The notes beneath the pieces are model-generated. The model searched no databases, had not been told where the DNA came from, and worked only from the letters and a program-made list of their open reading frames with translations. A stretch of 64,000 bases of DNA from Blastocladiella emersonii ATCC 22665 (Eukaryota > Fungi > Blastocladiomycota): NCBI GenBank assembly GCA_025594325.1, contig JANHCV010000012.1, positions 1,302,001-1,366,000 on the forward strand. The letters are read 5' to 3'. The position numbers and the translations under genes were made by a program. Each line of letters opens with the position of its first letter. Position 1 is the stretch's first letter. Below are positions 47,410-55,619 of the stretch, in pieces.

Positions 47410-50400
47410 TTACATCAGTCCCAGCTCGGTGCACACCTCGCGCAACGTATCTTTTTTGAGCGGCTTGGTCAAGAACACGTCGAACCCGGCCGCGAGACAC
47501 CGCTCGCGCTCCTCAGGCAGGGCGTTGGCTGTCACGGCCACGATCGGAATCGTGTACCCTGCCGCACGGATCGCCGCCATGGCCTCGTGGCCGCTACACA
47601 TCGACCGTGGTCGGTCGGAGAAAAGATCGCGGCCGGTGAACGGTGCGAGAGCCGTACCCCATGTTCGGCATCACCAGGTCCATGAGCACGAGATCGAACT
47701 TCTTGCGCTCGGGACCCGTCACCTGCGCCACGGCCTGCAACCCGTCAAGTGCCGAGTCGGCCTCGAACCCCATGCCCTCGACGAGCTTGCGCGTCACGCG
47801 CTGGACGAGCGCGTTGTCCTCGACGACGAGTACGCGTTTCTTGGGTTGCGCAGGCGGGGACGACGGTGGTTGTAGCGGTTCGACCGCCGCGGCCGCGACG
47901 GACGTGGAAGCTGCACCCGTCGCCGCAGAAACGCTCGCTGTCGTCAGCGACGCGGCGCGAACGTGGGTCGGCGGTGCTGCGGGCGGAAGTGACGCGATCT
48001 CGGGCACGGTAGAAGCGACCTGGACGGCGGCGGGAACTACTGCAGAATGAGCCACCGTCGGCGCTTCGCCTGCACCTGCGGGTTGTGTTGCGGCGGAACG
48101 ACTGCTGCGTATCGACGGCGCGACGGACGGCAGAAGCGGGACCCGCAGCGCCACCTCGAGGCTCGCGTCGCTGACTGGCGCCGCGCATGTAGCAGCGGCA
48201 GCGGGACCAATGACGGGCGGCGGTGGACACGGCCGAACCGAGCGGCTGCTGCGGACCGACGACGCAATGGATGGTGGTAGGGGAGCGTGCAGCGCGAGGT
48301 CGAGCGTCGCGTCGCTGGGGACGGGGGTCGGAGCAGCGGGCGAGGTGGGCGGACTCGAGGGTCGCGATGTAGATGGTTGCTGAATCTCGTCGGCGAGCGG
48401 TTCCTCGGTAAAGGTGCCGCAGCGCTGACTGCTCGGGTGCGACATCATCGGCTCAGCGGCCGGCGCGACGTCGATGTGCACGGACCGGTCGTTCGAGACC
48501 GTACTGCTGCAGTGGTTCGCCCGCGTCTCAGCCGTCCGTGGGGCGCGCTGTAGCACCGCCGGCCCGCATACCGGCGGCAGCGGGACGTTCATATCGAGCC
48601 CGCCGCGTTTCGGGTGCTCGAACCGGGCGACGCTCCCGCCGAGCGGCTGCAGCAGGGCGTCGATGACGGTGAGCTCGAGGCTGAGCGCGTTCCCGAGCAG
48701 GCGGATGAGGTGGTCGCCCGACTGCGACTGGACGGTGCGGAACGAGCACGCGTCGTCGTGGTGCAGCGACCCCGACCCGGACACGTCGCCGCGCTCGAGC
48801 AGGTCGAGCCGCGCGTACGGCGTGCACACGGGTCCGCGGCAGTGGAACCAGAGGGTCCGCGCGGGCGGCGGCGCGTACACGAGCTCGATGTTGACGGTGC
48901 TGCGCGAGCATGCGCTGTAGATGGCGATGACCGTGGCCTTGGCGACGACGCGGCGCAGGACGCACGTGCACGGGCCAAAGTCAACAACGACGCTGTCGGC
49001 CTCATCCGGGATCACCCACGTCTGGACCTGGATGTCGCGCGCGGCCATGCGGTCGGCGCACGCGCGGATCGCGTCGTCGAGGATCGCGCGCAGCGTCGTG
49101 GGCCCGGCGCCGCCGCCGCACTGCGCCGGGTCGCGGCACGCGAGCGCGTCGCCCGAGTCCATGAGGTCGACGAGGTTCGCGACGAGGTCGGCCGTGTACC
49201 CCATGCCGCGGTGGATACGCGCTGCGCGGTCCGCGGTTGCGGGCGGCATGCGTGGACGCGCGGCGTCGAGCGCGGCCGTGATCTTGGCCGTGGTCTCGGC
49301 GAGCTCGCGGCACACGAACCGCAGGAGCTGCGACTTGGACGTGCTGGCGCGGACCGCGGCGCTTTCGGCGACCTGGATCGCCTCGAGCATGCGGGTGCGG
49401 TCCGACACGTCGTGCAACAGCAAAACCTGCGCGAGCTCGCCGCGCTTGCTGCTGGTGACCTCGGACACGGTGGCCTCGGCGAAGAAGGCGCGGTCCGGGT
49501 GCCCGATCTGCCCGATCTCGTAGGTGCCCGGCTCGAGCGCCGTGAGGTCTGTCGCCGAGGGCACCACGTCCGACACGTGGACCTGCGCGAGGTCGACGCC
49601 CGAGAGACCGAGCTTGTCGAGCGCCGCCGCGTTGAGCCCGATAATGTACCCGAGCCCGTCGAGCACGAGGAGCGGGTCGCGGACCGTGCGCAGGATGCCC
49701 GTCGAGTAGGTGCGGATCGCCGTCACGAGCTCGGCCTGCTGCTGCAGCCGGTGCGCGACGTGGCGCGCCTTGAGGAACCGCAGGAACCCGCGGCGCATGA
49801 TCTCGGCCAGGACGAGGAAGAGCGCGAGGATCACGAACAGGAGCAGGAAGGGCCACGGCGTCGCGAACGACGCGCGCTGCTTGCCCGTGCCCGTGCACGA
49901 GAGAACCCAGACGCGGTCGATGATCTCAACCTCGAGCGCGTACGGCCGGCCGACGGTGCCCCGGGTGGTGTTGGTCGAGTAGATGAGCTTGCCCGTGCCC
50001 TGATCGCTCAGGTCGACGGCGAGACCCTTGGTCGCCGCGGGGCCGAGGTTGCTAGCGAGGATCGCCTGCGAGTTGACCGTGGCGACCATGATCCAGGTGC
50101 GGAACTCGTCGGCCACATCACGCACGACCAGGTAGAGGAAGAAGCGCTTGCTCGGGTGCGGGATCATCGAGTCGCGCGAGGACTGCAGCGAGAGGGCGGG
50201 GCGGCCGCTGACGAGCGTGGCCGAGATGGCGGATGCGAACTCGACGGGGACCTCCATGTCGAAGCCGACAGGGAAGGAGAACTGGTGGCACGGAATGATC
50301 CTACGCGGCGTGGAGGTGAGCCGGCTGATGGAAAGCGCGAGCATTTGACGTACTTGTGCCGCAGCAGGACCGGTGCGGAAAGGTAAAACGACGAAAACTC

Positions 50401-51148
50401 GGGCGGGCGAACGACCGAGATGTTGTAGCGTCGCTCAAAGAGCTTGACCTGCGGGTTCGAGAGCAGCGGGCCGAGCTGGATCGCGGACAGCCGGTCCGAC
50501 TGGTTGCCCGTCGCGGACCCGTACGTGACGAGCGACTCGTTGGTCATGATCCCGACGGCGGACATGAAGCCGGCGTAGTCAACGAGCTGTATGGGCGCGA
50601 GGGCCGTTAGTGGTCGGTCGTACCGTGAAGATCGTGCGAGACGTACAAACGTGTTCAGATTGGTGTTGAGGTCGAGCTTGAGCGAGTCCGCGAGCGAGCC
50701 GCACCGCCGCTTGACCTCGGCGGCGGCATACTTGCGCTCGACGCTGCGGAACCAGACAAAGAGCATGGTCGCAATGGCTACACGCTCTCACCGAGTCAGC
50801 CAGCTCCGCTCTCTCGTCCAATTCAACCAGACCCAGCGCACCGATCCCGACAAGCAACACAAGCAGCGCGACAAGTGCAGCCAGAACGCCGCGCCGGTAC
50901 CGCCACGCATACCGCCACCGGGACTCGGCGAACCCCTTGAGGTCGGCGCGGTCGCGAGTCCCGCTCCGCGCCCAGGTCTGGCCGGACCGGTTCGTCTGCG
51001 AGTGGTCCTGCCCGCTCAGCGGCTCGCTTTCGGAAGGTAGCGGCGGCGGCTGGGGCGGAGCGACGAGCGGTAGTCGGATGTCGTCGGCGTAGCCGGAGCG
51101 GTCGGGGCGGAGGTTGGTGTGGAAGACTGTGCGGAGAAGCTGCGGCAT
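47410..51148 (-). CDS. Hybrid histidine-kinase-like receptor A (TM-CHASE-like-TM-PAS-degenerate HisKA/HATPase-REC), multi-exon; start uncertain
   Basis: TM GVLAALVALLVLLVGIG; CHASE-like FPVGFDMEVPVEFASAISATLVSGRPAL; PAS ILRTVRDPLLVLDGLGYIIGLN; H-box SKSQLLRFVCREL; REC RVLVVEDN...FDLVLMDLVMP...IVAVTANA...FLTKP. Confidence 0.85.
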
Positions 51149-51547
51149 CGAGAGGACGAGGAGTTGATGGCGAGTGTGATCGAGGGGCTGTCCTGGACTT
51201 GGTCCCGGGCTTGCGGCGATCGCAGGCAGCGGCGGTTCGCCCGCGGGCAGTGCGGCGGGGTTCCCAGAGTAGCGAGAGGTGGCCGGGGCATCAATGCACC
51301 AACTCGGCAGGTCGCGGATCCATGGCACGGGGGCTGTCTGTCGTGGGAAGCCGTCGGATGCCGCGCTCGTCCACCGAAATCGCGGCACGCGCTCTGGTGG
51401 CGTCGCCACTCCACATGATGGCAACGTGTGGCGCATCGCGTCCTGCAAGTCTGCTACTGCCGCCATCATGCCTGCATGCGTGAGAAACGGGTAGATACGG
51501 TACATGGCGCCATATGATGTACATGTATTCAAATCACCCAGTCAGCT

Positions 51548-54500
51548 TCACATCAGTCCTAGCTCGGCGCACACCTCGCGCAGCGTCTCCTTCTTGAGCG
51601 GCTTGGTCAGGAACACGTTGAACCCGGACGCGAGACACCGCTCGCGCTCCTCGGGCAGCGCGTTCGCCGTCACTGCCACGATCGGAAGCTCGGCTAGTCC
51701 GAACCCGGCCGCGCGGATCGCCGCCATGGCCTCGTGTCCGCTACACGTCGATTGTCGTCAGTCACCAAATCAGAGCGCAAGTAGGGGATTTAGACCGTAC
51801 CCCATGTTCGGCATGACGAGGTCCATGAGCACGAGATCGAACTGCTTGCGGTCGGGCCCCGTCACCTGCGCGACCGCCTGCAGCCCATCGAGCGCCGAGT
51901 CGGCCGTGAACCCGAGCCCCTCGACCAGCTTGCGCGTGACGCGCTGCACGAGCGCGTTGTCCTCGACGACGAGCACACGCTTCTTGGGTTGCGCGGGCAG
52001 GGACGACGGTGATGGCGGCGGGGGGAGTGGGGTCGTGGTTGTCGATGCTGGTGGTGGGACCGCGTCAAACGCGACGATGGGCGAGGCGACAGTCGCGGTC
52101 GTGGTTACGGCGGGCTTGCTCGGAACAGTAGGCAGGGCCGCGAGCTGCGCGACGGGCGTGCTCGGCTGCGTGGGCGAGTCCGCGAACTGCGTGGTCGGCG
52201 TGCCGGGCGCCGTCGGGTACGGCACCGCGGGCGCGCTGGGCGTGGTCGGTACCGAAAGCGCTGGCGGCGGAGGCGGGGTACACGGCATGTCGCGAGCAGC
52301 GGGTTCGGGTTCAGGAGGGACAAAAGTCTCGGGGGCGGCGTGCGTTGCAGAAGGAGCGACAGGGCTCGCGACTCGAGGCAGCATCGCGGCCGAAGACACG
52401 CGGCGGGCAGCGGGGAGGTACGGCTCCGCGGTGCGCGACGCCGGCGGCACGAGGTCGGCGCGAGACACGCGGCGGATGAGGGCGGGCGGCGGTTTCGGGA
52501 AGCGTCCACCGAGGAGCGGGCTCGAGGGGACCGATGTCCGCGCGGCGGTGCGCGGCGCGAGCGGGCTCGATGGCATGGGAGCCGTGCGCGTCGCGAGCGG
52601 GCTGGAAGGTACGGGCACCGTGCGAGGGGCCAGTGGACTCGACGGCCGTGGGGCTGGGCGCTGGGCGAGCGGGCTCGACGGGACGGGTGTCCGAGCAGCG
52701 GTGCGGCCAGCATCAGGTACAGGTTGCTGCGCTACGACGCTCGGAGAACGCGGAGCCGACAGCTCGGGCGGTGGGTCGCGTAGGAGCTGGACCCCGTCCA
52801 GCCCGCTGGCGGCCGACGCCGAGGCGCGGGACCGCGGCATCCGCGGCTCCTCCTCGTCGTCCTCCTCATCATGCACGTCAATCGCCACATGGAACTCGTG
52901 CCCCTCGGCCGCGGGCGCGACCTCCGGCATCTTGTCCTGGACCGCAAACGACGTGGTCGTAGTACGGCGACGGTGCTTGGACCGGCGCGACGGCTGGTCC
53001 GACTGCGCCGATGCGCGGCGCGCGCGGGCCCAGTCGCGCGGCGGTGGGATCGGAAGCCGGAAGTCGAGTCCGCTGCGCTCCGGGTGGCGGAACTGGTCGA
53101 CGGCGCCGCCGACGGGGCGGAGGAGCGCGCCGATCACGGTGAGCGCGAGGCTCAGCGTGTTGCCGAGGAGACGGTCGATGCGCGCGTCGGGGCCGGTCCG
53201 CGGGGCGGCCGAGCCGTGGTTGTGCGCGGGTCCGCCGTCGAGCAACCGAGGCGCAGGTTCGGGCGTGCCGCCGAACAGGTCGATGCGCGCGTACGGCGTG
53301 CACACGGTGCCGCGGCAGTGGAACCAGACTGAAGAGGTCGCGGTGGAAACGCCGATCTCGACGTCGACGGTCGAGCGCGGGCACGCCGAGTGGACCGCAA
53401 TCGACACCGCGAGATCAACGACGCGGCGCAGGAGGCACGTACACCCGTCGATCACCGGCGCCGCCGCCGCGTCGTGGTCGGGCGCGACCCACTGGCGGAC
53501 GCGCAGGTCGTGCTCGTTGACGCGGCCGCGGCACGCGCCGACGGCCGCGTCGAGGATCCCGCGGAGACTGCCGACGCCGCACCGTCGCTCGGCGTCGGCG
53601 CACGCGGGCAGGTCGTCGGCCATGAGGTCGTCGAGGCACGCGAGCAGGTCGCCGATGTACCGCACGGCGCGCTGGACGCGGTCCGCGCGGTGCGCGTCGT
53701 GCGGCGGCAACCACCGGGCGACGGCGACGGCGTCGAGCTCGCGGGCGATGGTGCGGATCGACGCCTTGACCTCGCGCGAGACGTGCGCGAGGAGCTGCGA
53801 TTTCGACTCGCTGGCGCGGTTCGCGGCGGTCTCGCTGAGCTGGATCGCGTTGAGCGTGCGCGTCCGCTCGGACACGTCGTGCAGGAGCAAAACCTGCGCG
53901 AGCTCGCCGCGCTTGCTGCCCGAGACTTCCGAGACGGTGGCCTCGGCAAAGAACGGATGGCTCGAGTGGCCGACCTGGCCGACCGTGTAGGTACCGGGGG
54001 CGAGGGTGGTGGGCAGGGCCATGGACGGGACGAGGTCCGAGACATGGACCTGGGCGAGGTCCGCCTCGCCGGCGATCCCGAGCTTCTTGAGCGCGGCCGG
54101 GTTGAGCCCAACAATGTACCCGAACGCGTCGAGGACGAGCAGCGGGTCGCGGACAGCGCGCAGGATGCCGGTCGAGTAGTTGCGGATGGCCTTGACGAGC
54201 ATGGCCTGCTGCTCGAGGCGGTGCGCGAGGCTGCGCGCCGTGAGCAGGCGGTGGAGGCCGCGGCGCACGATCTCGGCGAGGGCGAGGAACAGGACGACGA
54301 TGGTGACGAGCAGCACGAACGGCCACGGCGTCGCGAACGAGCCGCGCAGCGCGTGGGTGCCGGTGCACGACAGGCTCCAGACGCGGTCGACGATGTCGAT
54401 GGCGACGGGCGCGGACGCGCCGTACGGCTTCGAGTCGCTCGCGACCGAGTACAGCAGCACGTTCGTGTCCGTGTCGTGGAGCTGGACCGACAGGTCGCGG

Positions 54501-55619
54501 CCGAGCAGGGCGCGGTCAAAGTCGGAGGCAAAGATGGCCTTGGAGTTGACGATGGCGACCTGGATCCACAGTGGGAAGTCCGGGTCGGCGGCGTGCGTGA
54601 TGCTCTTGAAGATGTAGGTGCGCTCGCTCGCGCCCGGGATGAGCGAGTCGGGCGGGTCCTGCAGGGCGAGCACAGGCCGCTGGGTGGCGAAGGCGCGCTG
54701 GATGGACGCGAGGTACTCGTCCGGGATCTGCATGTCGAAGCCAGCGGGGAAGGTGAAGTGGAGGGACGTCGGCGTGAAGCTACTCGCACAAAGTGAGCCC
54801 ATGGATGAGGTAGTAAGACGCAAGGTGGCGGCGTACCGGTAGCGCAGGGTGATGGGAATGGACGTGAGCTTGAGCGAGGCCTCTTCGGTGGGCGGTTTCG
54901 TCGGGTCGAGGCCGAAGCGGCGGCGGTACGTGTCCGTGTCGGAGGGGGCGATGAGCGGGCCGAGCTGGACCGAGGCGAGGCGGCTCGACTGGTTGGAGGC
55001 GGCGCGGCCGTAGGACTCGAGCGAGGCGTTGGTCATGGGCCCGACGGTGCTCATGAAGGCGGCGTAGTCTATGATGTAGGTCCCGAGGTTGGTGTTGAAA
55101 TCGAGCTTGAGCGAGTCGGCCAGCGACCCGCACCGGCGGTGGACCTCGGCGTGGGTGTTGGCAGTCTCGACGCTGCGGATCCAGACGAAGAGGACGGTGG
55201 CGAGGGCTACGGACCGCGTGGAAGCGTGAACAATGGCCACGGAGGGGAAGGACATGCGAGTGAGCCGTACCGATGCCTGCGAGAAGGACGAGCAGGCCGG
55301 CAGCCGCAGCTACGACGCCGCGGCGGTGGCGCCAGAGGCGGTAGAGTGCCGAGGACGTGAAGTGCTCGAGGTCGGGATCGTCGTCGTGGTGGTGGCCGCG
55401 CGGTGCACGATGGCCGGCGTCGTGGTGGTAGTGGGTGTCGCGATGCGCAAAGGGCGAGAGAAAGGGGACGTGGTCCTCGTCAGCGGCGCGGGTGAGGATC
55501 AGCGAGGGGAGCAGGATCGAGTGCGACGAGAGGGTGGTGCGCAGGGCGGGGCGTGATGAGGCGCGTGATGACGGCTCCCGGGCCAGCGGGAGCGCGTGGA
55601 AGTGTTGACGGTTGGGCAT
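51548..55619 (-). CDS. Hybrid histidine-kinase-like receptor B (same architecture), multi-exon
   Basis: TM GVVAAAAGLLVLLAGIG; CHASE-like FPAGFDMQIPDEYLASIQRAFATQRPVL and IDIVDRVWSL; PAS; H-box SKSQLLAHVSREV; REC nearly identical to gene A. Confidence 0.87.

Follow-up and report, generated by a model that had tools for sequence, protein, structure and literature searches.

Fungal hybrid histidine kinases (HKs) with a CHASE sensor form group XIX (Kabbara 2019, PMC6324907), and two of them, AMAG_01137 of Allomyces and protein 296463 of Basidiobolus, have been named fungal cytokinin-receptor homologues (Herivaux 2017, PMC5285503). Both papers treat the family as ordinary kinases, and their text mentions neither the H-box nor the N-box. 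The published members, which also include CaHHK3-5 of Catenaria, share the order of transmembrane helix (TM), CHASE, TM, PAS, DHp, CA and receiver (REC) and keep the motif HE[LM]RNP. Histidine pseudokinases are already known in bacteria and plants. Here we analyzed two neighboring minus-strand genes, A and B, in a 64,000-nt window of the genome of Blastocladiella emersonii ATCC 22665 (assembly GCA_025594325.1, contig JANHCV010000012.1, positions 1,302,001 to 1,366,000). Both encode CHASE, TM, PAS, DHp-like and CA-like parts, a disordered linker and REC, and thus follow the group XIX order, but in contrast to the published members they carry an Arg in the H-box and have lost RNP. Genes A and B are very probably separate intact members of group XIX from Blastocladiomycota and, as to their kinase part, histidine pseudokinases.

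The H-boxes of genes A and B read SKSQLLRFVCRELAETT and SKSQLLAHVSREVKASI, respectively. A search of 1.84 billion representative proteins with a profile of three paralogs gave 826 matches, the best 57 of which were aligned by hmmalign. In this alignment, the Arg of both proteins falls in the His column of the motif HE[LIM]R[NT]P, which is occupied by His in nearly all relatives. The H, E, R and P of the motif were at least 90% conserved in a 35-sequence alignment. The Arg is followed by ELAE in A and EVKA in B versus E[LM]RN in the relatives, and over the 11 residues after it A and B share 3, compared with 8 shared by the B. emersonii paralog H9P43_002927 and a far more distant Catenaria protein. 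The H-box of H9P43_002927 is FVCHEMRNP, with the His codon CAC, and is matched by Pfam HisKA at a sub-threshold score of 23.8 bits. Neither HisKA nor HATPase_c matched A or B even at E ≤ 10, and the phospho-acceptor His of catalytic HisKA kinases is missing from both. A His one helical turn upstream is present in B (His572, three residues before the Arg) and in a third close paralog, gene C, and is not found in gene A, which reads RFVCREL. DNA contigs of the sample showed 0 differences in both H-box regions; they come from the same sample and are not independent support. A splice form restoring the canonical boxes was also looked for: at 47-56 kb of the window, the coding strand has no cryptic exon that would supply an H-box, N-box or G2 motif.

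In the CA-like domain, the canonical NLxxNAxKFT is replaced by RRVVAKATVIAIYSAC in A and RRVVDLAVSIAVHSAC in B, DxGxG by WFHCRGPVCTPY in both proteins, and GxGLGL by LLGNALSL (A) and LLGNTLSL (B). The N-box Asn, the G1 motif DxGxG and the G2 motif GxGxG that characterize the Bergerat fold are therefore absent, and a profile made from canonical kinases was unable to align the CA region of A and B. The ATP-lid region of gene A is a low-confidence loop in the AlphaFold model (core residues 360-381). As a separate observation, 7 Cys and 3 His residues are invariant among A, B and H9P43_002927 in the windows 48572-49200 and 53039-53660, which cover the CA-like domain and the end of DHp. They occur in the motifs ACxD, RCG, CxCxLRRVV, S[AS]C and VCTPY, and Allomyces AMAG_01137 shares the motif GCTC. 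On this pattern, the former nucleotide pocket could conceivably house a metal or redox site.

The receivers carry all residues required of a hybrid-kinase receiver, namely the acidic pair, the phospho-Asp, Thr and Lys (E1051/D1052, D1098, T1126 and K1148 in A; E1179/D1180, D1226, T1257 and K1279 in B). Their Pfam Response_reg (PF00072) scores, taken after splicing, exceed the cut-off of 30.2 bits in both genes (Table 1). The first-pass annotation of this DNA, made by a model from the letters and their open reading frames, had already read a phospho-His changed to Arg, lost N, G1 and G2 boxes and an intact receiver in both genes, and all three readings were borne out.

Pfam CHASE itself had no direct match in either sensor. 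The profile of the A and B sensors nevertheless aligned with Pfam CHASE-positive relatives (hhalign, 99.1%, E = 9e-19). The AlphaFold2 (AF2) model of the gene A sensor had a predicted local distance difference test score (pLDDT) of 88.9, and its top PDB matches were the sensors of PcrK and AHK4 with template modeling scores of 0.63-0.70 (Foldseek), in agreement with the CHASE sensor proposed at first pass. As in the fungal CHASE family, this domain lies between two TM helices, with TM1 and TM2 read from sequence and model. The core of gene A (PAS-DHp-CA), modeled by AlphaFold with a pLDDT of 87.5 from an input alignment that included canonical kinases, consists of TM2 running into a long helix (core residues 6-62), a PAS beta sheet (67-154), a two-helix DHp and an alpha/beta CA-like domain. 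Foldseek matched this model to WalK, YF1, LOV-kinases, GacS, RetS, DivL, NifL and the histidine-kinase-related domain (HKRD) of plant phytochromes A and B, with the best E down to 9e-16, and both the DHp hairpin and the CA fold were recognized. Of these matches, RetS, DivL, NifL and the phytochrome HKRD are known to be non-canonical. A PDB sequence search with the three-paralog profile gave nothing at E ≤ 0.01.

The proteins DivL of Caulobacter, RetS of Pseudomonas and PsmA of Streptomyces keep the HK fold and lack the canonical autokinase function, as is predicted for A and B. PsmA is, like A and B, a hybrid with REC that has lost the His, the E/DxxT/N motif and key ATP-binding residues (PMC12963549). 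There is no sequence relation of A and B to these three proteins beyond the superfamily. In contrast to the bacterial pseudokinases, A and B are eukaryotic membrane receptors, have their CHASE domain outside the cell and retain every active-site residue of the receiver; at the His position, DivL carries Tyr and RetS still has His. The plant receptors ETR2, EIN4 and ERS2 and the phytochrome HKRD are also HK-derived receptors without catalytic residues, some of them with a receiver, but they differ in the sensor (ethylene-binding TM and GAF, or PHY) and are not orthologous to A and B. The ethylene-binding TM and GAF combination was not found in A and B, and neither had a GAF match. Plant degenerate receptors have been reported to be Ser/Thr kinases, an activity needing the ATP site that is absent from A and B; an ETR2-like Ser/Thr kinase activity was considered for them and is unlikely without that site. 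The resemblance to ETR2 and EIN4 drawn in the first-pass annotation is a functional analogy only. The closest sensor structures, those of Arabidopsis AHK4/CRE1 and Xanthomonas PcrK, share only 14-16% sequence identity with A and B and, unlike them, belong to active kinases in which the H, N, G1 and G2 boxes are all canonical.

The closest relatives of A and B are Blastocladiomycota proteins (B. emersonii paralogs and proteins of Catenaria, Sorochytrium, Paraphysoderma and Allomyces), and A and B nest inside this clade. AMAG_01137 aligned with 99% of the gene A core at 35% identity (E = 4e-60), which supports group XIX membership, and Basidiobolus 296463 and proteins of Racocetra, Dimargaritales and Paraphysoderma were among the profile matches. 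Most Blastocladiomycota relatives contain Pfam CHASE, PAS, HisKA and REC domains and lack HATPase_c. The N, G1 and G2 motifs are also missing from H9P43_002927 and from the Catenaria, Sorochytrium, Paraphysoderma and Allomyces (AMAG_01137) proteins, and each of these retains its His; AMAG_01137 has, like A and B, a CA-like domain devoid of these motifs. Since His-bearing relatives share the same degenerate CA-like sequence, the ATP-site loss is, by this alignment, family-wide, older than the split of Allomyces, Catenaria and Blastocladiella and unrelated to the duplication of A and B. Loss of HATPase_c throughout the family with His and REC kept argues that the lineage has long worked without an ATP site of its own. 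The trans-phosphorylation suggested at first pass is unlikely if the heterodimer partner is to come from the same family, because no clade relative examined has ATP-binding motifs. The Mg-binding N-box Asn was replaced by H, Y, R or D in 11 of 11 fungal CHASE-PAS hybrid kinases in the profile alignment (from Dimargaritales, Glomeromycotina, Basidiobolus and Paraphysoderma), with G1 and G2 variably eroded. It may be that none of the published fungal cytokinin receptor homologues has a canonical ATP site.

The history of the H-box also involves gene C (H9P43_002747; JANHCV010000002.1, L003:5800-8739). Its annotated 624-aa product skips a part of the gene, whose genomic frame runs from CHASE via PAS and DHp to CA without interruption. 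At the H-box, gene C reads VAHDLAAT, with the His kept and RNP gone; of its receiver only 41 C-terminal residues remain, and no branch of the tree is longer than that of gene C. The tree topology was (H9P43_002927,(A,(B,C))) with support of 98/97 for B+C, and an A+B clade was rejected by the approximately unbiased (AU) test (p = 0.021). Because B groups with C and A comes next, the RNP motif is placed by the tree as lost in the ancestor of A, B and C. The change of His to Arg is a single CAC-to-CGC transition, which according to these sequences occurred either twice, in A and B separately, or once with a reversal in C. Since His-bearing gene C groups with B, the shared Arg need not represent one pre-duplication event, and such an event was dropped as an established fact. 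The first-pass annotation had taken the shared Arg to imply that kinase loss preceded the A/B duplication, a claim that is not supported in this form, given the far older, family-wide loss of the ATP motifs and the retained His of gene C. Of its proposed survey of relatives for the His-to-Arg change, the part that stands is that nearly all of them have His. The H-box His is also replaced (by N, G, S or R) in 6 members of the wider family, including a Catenaria protein and B. emersonii H9P43_005703. As these members also have no H-box His, the phospho-acceptor is, judging by their H-boxes, lost repeatedly in the wider receptor family. No synteny was found between the window and the H9P43_002927 locus, and the latter is therefore a dispersed paralog. 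The B. emersonii series thus comprises H9P43_002927 with His, RNP and REC, gene C with His but no RNP and with REC lost, and A and B with REC but no His.

Comparison of A with B revealed the most conserved part in REC (91% amino-acid identity), followed by PAS (74%), TM2 (70%), DHp and CA-like (49% each), CHASE (46%) and the least conserved linker (33%). Nonsynonymous divergence (dN) was 0.04-0.05 in REC and 0.04-0.16 over REC, PAS and TM2, compared with about 0.8-1.1 in the linker. Relative rates were used in place of the absolute ratio of nonsynonymous to synonymous divergence (dN/dS), with lineage-specific changes polarised by Catenaria and a JGI outgroup. In DHp, unique changes numbered 22 in A versus 7 in H9P43_002927 (p = 0.008), 29 in C versus 8 (p = 0.0008) and 22 in B versus 12 (p = 0.12, a trend). 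No rate difference from this His-bearing paralog was found in TM2, PAS and the CA-like domain. In the per-domain dN/dS check suggested at first pass, absolute values were unreliable owing to saturation; the domain ranks and relative rates show constraint. Acceleration of DHp only fits a loss of the phospho-acceptor function alone, with other parts of the receptor probably still in use. With the retained HK fold, the missing residues and the constraint outside DHp, A and B would fall into a PsmA/DivL-like pseudokinase class, their inactivity being predicted from sequences and models.

Since the His, RNP and ATP/Mg motifs are gone, A and B have no residues for autophosphorylation, for phosphate acceptance by DHp or for the HisKA E/DxxT/N phosphatase. 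Conservation extends to the CHASE fold, TM2, PAS and the CA-like scaffold and is strongest in the receiver, whose catalytic residues are complete. ArcB and the phosphatase mode of AHK4/CRE1 are known cases of reverse phosphotransfer through a hybrid-kinase receiver; in AHK4, AHP~P is drained through the receiver, which provides a model for the sink proposed here. The receiver Asp would be the sole phospho-site of A and B and could be charged by reverse transfer from a Ypd1-type HPt protein, itself fed by other, ATP-competent kinases. A ligand bound at CHASE would act via TM2, PAS and the DHp/CA scaffold on the accessibility or lifetime of the receiver phosphate, and the receptor, depending on the signal, would drain or buffer the phosphate of the phosphorelay rather than supply it. 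Such a ligand-gated acceptor of HPt phosphate is proposed tentatively. Pseudokinase receptors with a receiver-based sink are the best explanation as a whole, with a chance that falls just short of even.

Several points weigh against this explanation. No HPt gene was found within 10 kb of three other family members. The receiver Asp of the hybrid pseudokinase PsmA is dispensable (PMC12963549), and therefore a conserved REC is no proof of phospho-signalling. Judged by sequence, A and B might conceivably still bind ATP in a non-canonical pocket. Gene models and splicing were read from genomic DNA. Synonymous sites are saturated, with a G+C content at third codon positions (GC3) of 0.88, which makes absolute dN/dS unreliable, and the dN/dS of DHp was 1.27 by NG86 versus 0.23 by maximum likelihood (ML). 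A wider form of the sink explanation, which we consider rather unlikely, is that the whole Blastocladiomycota CHASE-PAS lineage signals without autokinase activity, as ligand-gated drains or relays of HPt phosphate, extending maybe to all fungal homologues. Genes A and B would then represent the end state, in which the DHp His itself is dispensable.

The main rival explanation is that A and B are phosphorylation-independent regulators acting by protein contacts, in the style of RetS-GacS, DivL-CckA or PsmA-DivIVA. Their partners could be His-bearing paralogs (H9P43_002927, for example), joined in DHp heterodimers, or some other protein, and REC would serve as a docking module. The kinase regions of RetS and DivL were among the good Foldseek matches, PsmA works without its receiver Asp, several paralogs with a compatible DHp are encoded in the same genome, and the fast divergence of DHp is expected if partner specificity changed. 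However, all five catalytic REC residues are present in both genes at the identity given above, although pseudo-receivers usually lose some, and family partners also lack ATP motifs, hence they have no kinase activity to modulate. Contact regulation is thus unlikely, if worth keeping in mind. Could A and B instead be non-canonical kinases, using another phospho-residue (e.g., His572 of B) or acting as Ser/Thr kinases with a remodelled pocket? Their CA-like domain folds confidently and evolves under the same constraint as that of the His-bearing paralog, and the upstream His occurs in B and gene C. Yet this His is missing from A, nothing is left of the N-box Asn, of the Asp and glycines of G1 or of the glycines of G2, the lid is a low-confidence region, and no Pfam kinase or ATPase model matches, all of which leaves such an activity barely credible.

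Two other explanations concern the genes themselves. The decay of the close paralog gene C, with its REC remnant and longest branch, and the accelerated DHp would be in line with A and B being young pseudogenes or functionless relics that are still open. This is highly improbable given that both frames are open over about 1200 codons at a GC content of 68-73%, with every splice site intact, and that dN is 0.04-0.16 in REC, PAS and TM2 against about 1 in the linker. Outside DHp their rates equal those of the His-bearing paralog, and as PAS, CA-like and REC evolve no faster than there, A and B are very probably not decaying pseudogenes. The retention of both frames, claimed at first pass, is consistent with this domain-specific constraint. 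The other explanation follows the NCBI annotation, in which the exons of B and A make up a 2428-aa double receptor. This product is identical with gene B through residue 1288 and with the last 186 residues and most of the body of gene A. The last exon of B and the first exon of A are in one frame about 400 nt apart, and the membrane topology of the fusion would be feasible. The fusion needs a 435-nt intron (51574-51140) that would take out the last 8 codons and the stop of B, whereas the seven homology-supported introns are 53-64 nt long. Besides, B ends where A and H9P43_002927 end (REVC.ELGL[ML] before the stop), and two in-frame stops follow. A real fusion product is accordingly improbable. 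Because B ends exactly as A and H9P43_002927 do and supported introns are about 60 nt, two separate genes were read, and the NCBI fusion is probably an annotation artefact.

The coordinates of genes A and B and their parts are given in Table 1. The G+C content of the region is 65-73%. The two long minus-strand frames, found open at first pass, correspond to complete spliced genes that are paralogous to each other and to H9P43_002927; gene A was supported by tblastn against the latter. The supported introns have the ends GT[AG]CG...YAG, and those of gene A measure 64, 60, 53 and 64 nt. The start codon of gene A is uncertain, since the upstream frame is open to an ATG at 51505. Gene B ends in REVCAELGLM before the stop codon, a C-terminus homologous to those with which gene A and H9P43_002927 naturally end. 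An intron after NTNLNTF in CHASE is present in gene A (50587-50646) and H9P43_002927 and gone from gene B (55050-55110), where it has been cleanly lost; A, B and H9P43_002927 have their three other intron positions in common. The gap between genes B and A is notably short. The REC-coding DNA is the most alike part of A and B, and short-read contigs cross-map between the receiver exons 51803-52011 and 47660-47870 (24 differences in 209 nt), so that assembly and read mapping need care here.

Table 1. Coordinates of genes A and B and of the parts of their products (positions in the window)
Feature	Position	Strand	Remarks
Gene A	47410..51148	-	1165 aa; homology-guided spliced model without internal stops
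Gene A exons	51148-50842, 50777-50647, 50586-50354, 50300-47658, 47593-47410	-	Stop included
Gene A extracellular CHASE-fold sensor	49871..50751	-	Residues 112-367; two introns inside
Gene A TM2, juxtamembrane helix, PAS-like domain	49394..49870	-	Residues 368-526; weak Pfam PAS match
Gene A DHp-like helical hairpin with degenerate H-box	49100..49393	-	Residues 527-624; AF2 helices 156-207 and 210-238 of the core
Gene A Arg555, codon CGC	49307..49309	-	Phospho-acceptor column of H-box; seen in DNA contigs
Gene A CA-like alpha/beta domain without N, G1, G2	48572..49099	-	Residues 625-800
Gene A linker, Pro/Ser/Ala-rich	47846..48571	-	Residues 801-1042; from translation
Gene A receiver	47413..47845	-	Residues 1043-1165; intron 47594-47657; Pfam Response_reg 89.3 bits
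Gene B	51548..55619	-	1296 aa; homology-guided spliced model without internal stops
Gene B exons	55619-55271, 55206-54837, 54779-51801, 51740-51548	-	Stop included
Gene B extracellular CHASE-fold sensor	54341..55180	-	Residues 126-386; one intron inside
Gene B TM2, juxtamembrane helix, PAS-like domain	53861..54340	-	Residues 387-546
Gene B DHp-like helical hairpin with degenerate H-box	53570..53860	-	Residues 547-643
Gene B Arg575, codon CGC	53774..53776	-	Phospho-acceptor column of H-box; seen in DNA contigs
Gene B CA-like alpha/beta domain without N, G1, G2	53039..53569	-	Residues 644-820
Gene B linker, Pro/Ser-rich	51989..53038	-	Residues 821-1170; from translation
Gene B receiver	51551..51988	-	Residues 1171-1296; intron 51741-51800; Pfam Response_reg 79.8 bits

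A literature search found no paper on a missing ATP site or a missing His in Blastocladiomycota CHASE members and, in line with the first-pass annotation, no described fungal CHASE pseudo-HK system. Fungal CHASE kinases, published as cytokinin-receptor homologues, have served as an argument for plant-hormone sensing in early fungi. Should the Blastocladiomycota members be unable to bind ATP, and two of them unable even to carry a DHp phosphate, their signalling logic would not be the plant one, and claims of function made from domain names alone would need another look. If true for the whole lineage, this receptor logic would be one not described for eukaryotic two-component systems. With the series of B. 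emersonii paralogs ready to hand, it could be tested which of its parts a hybrid kinase still requires when the kinase reaction is lost.

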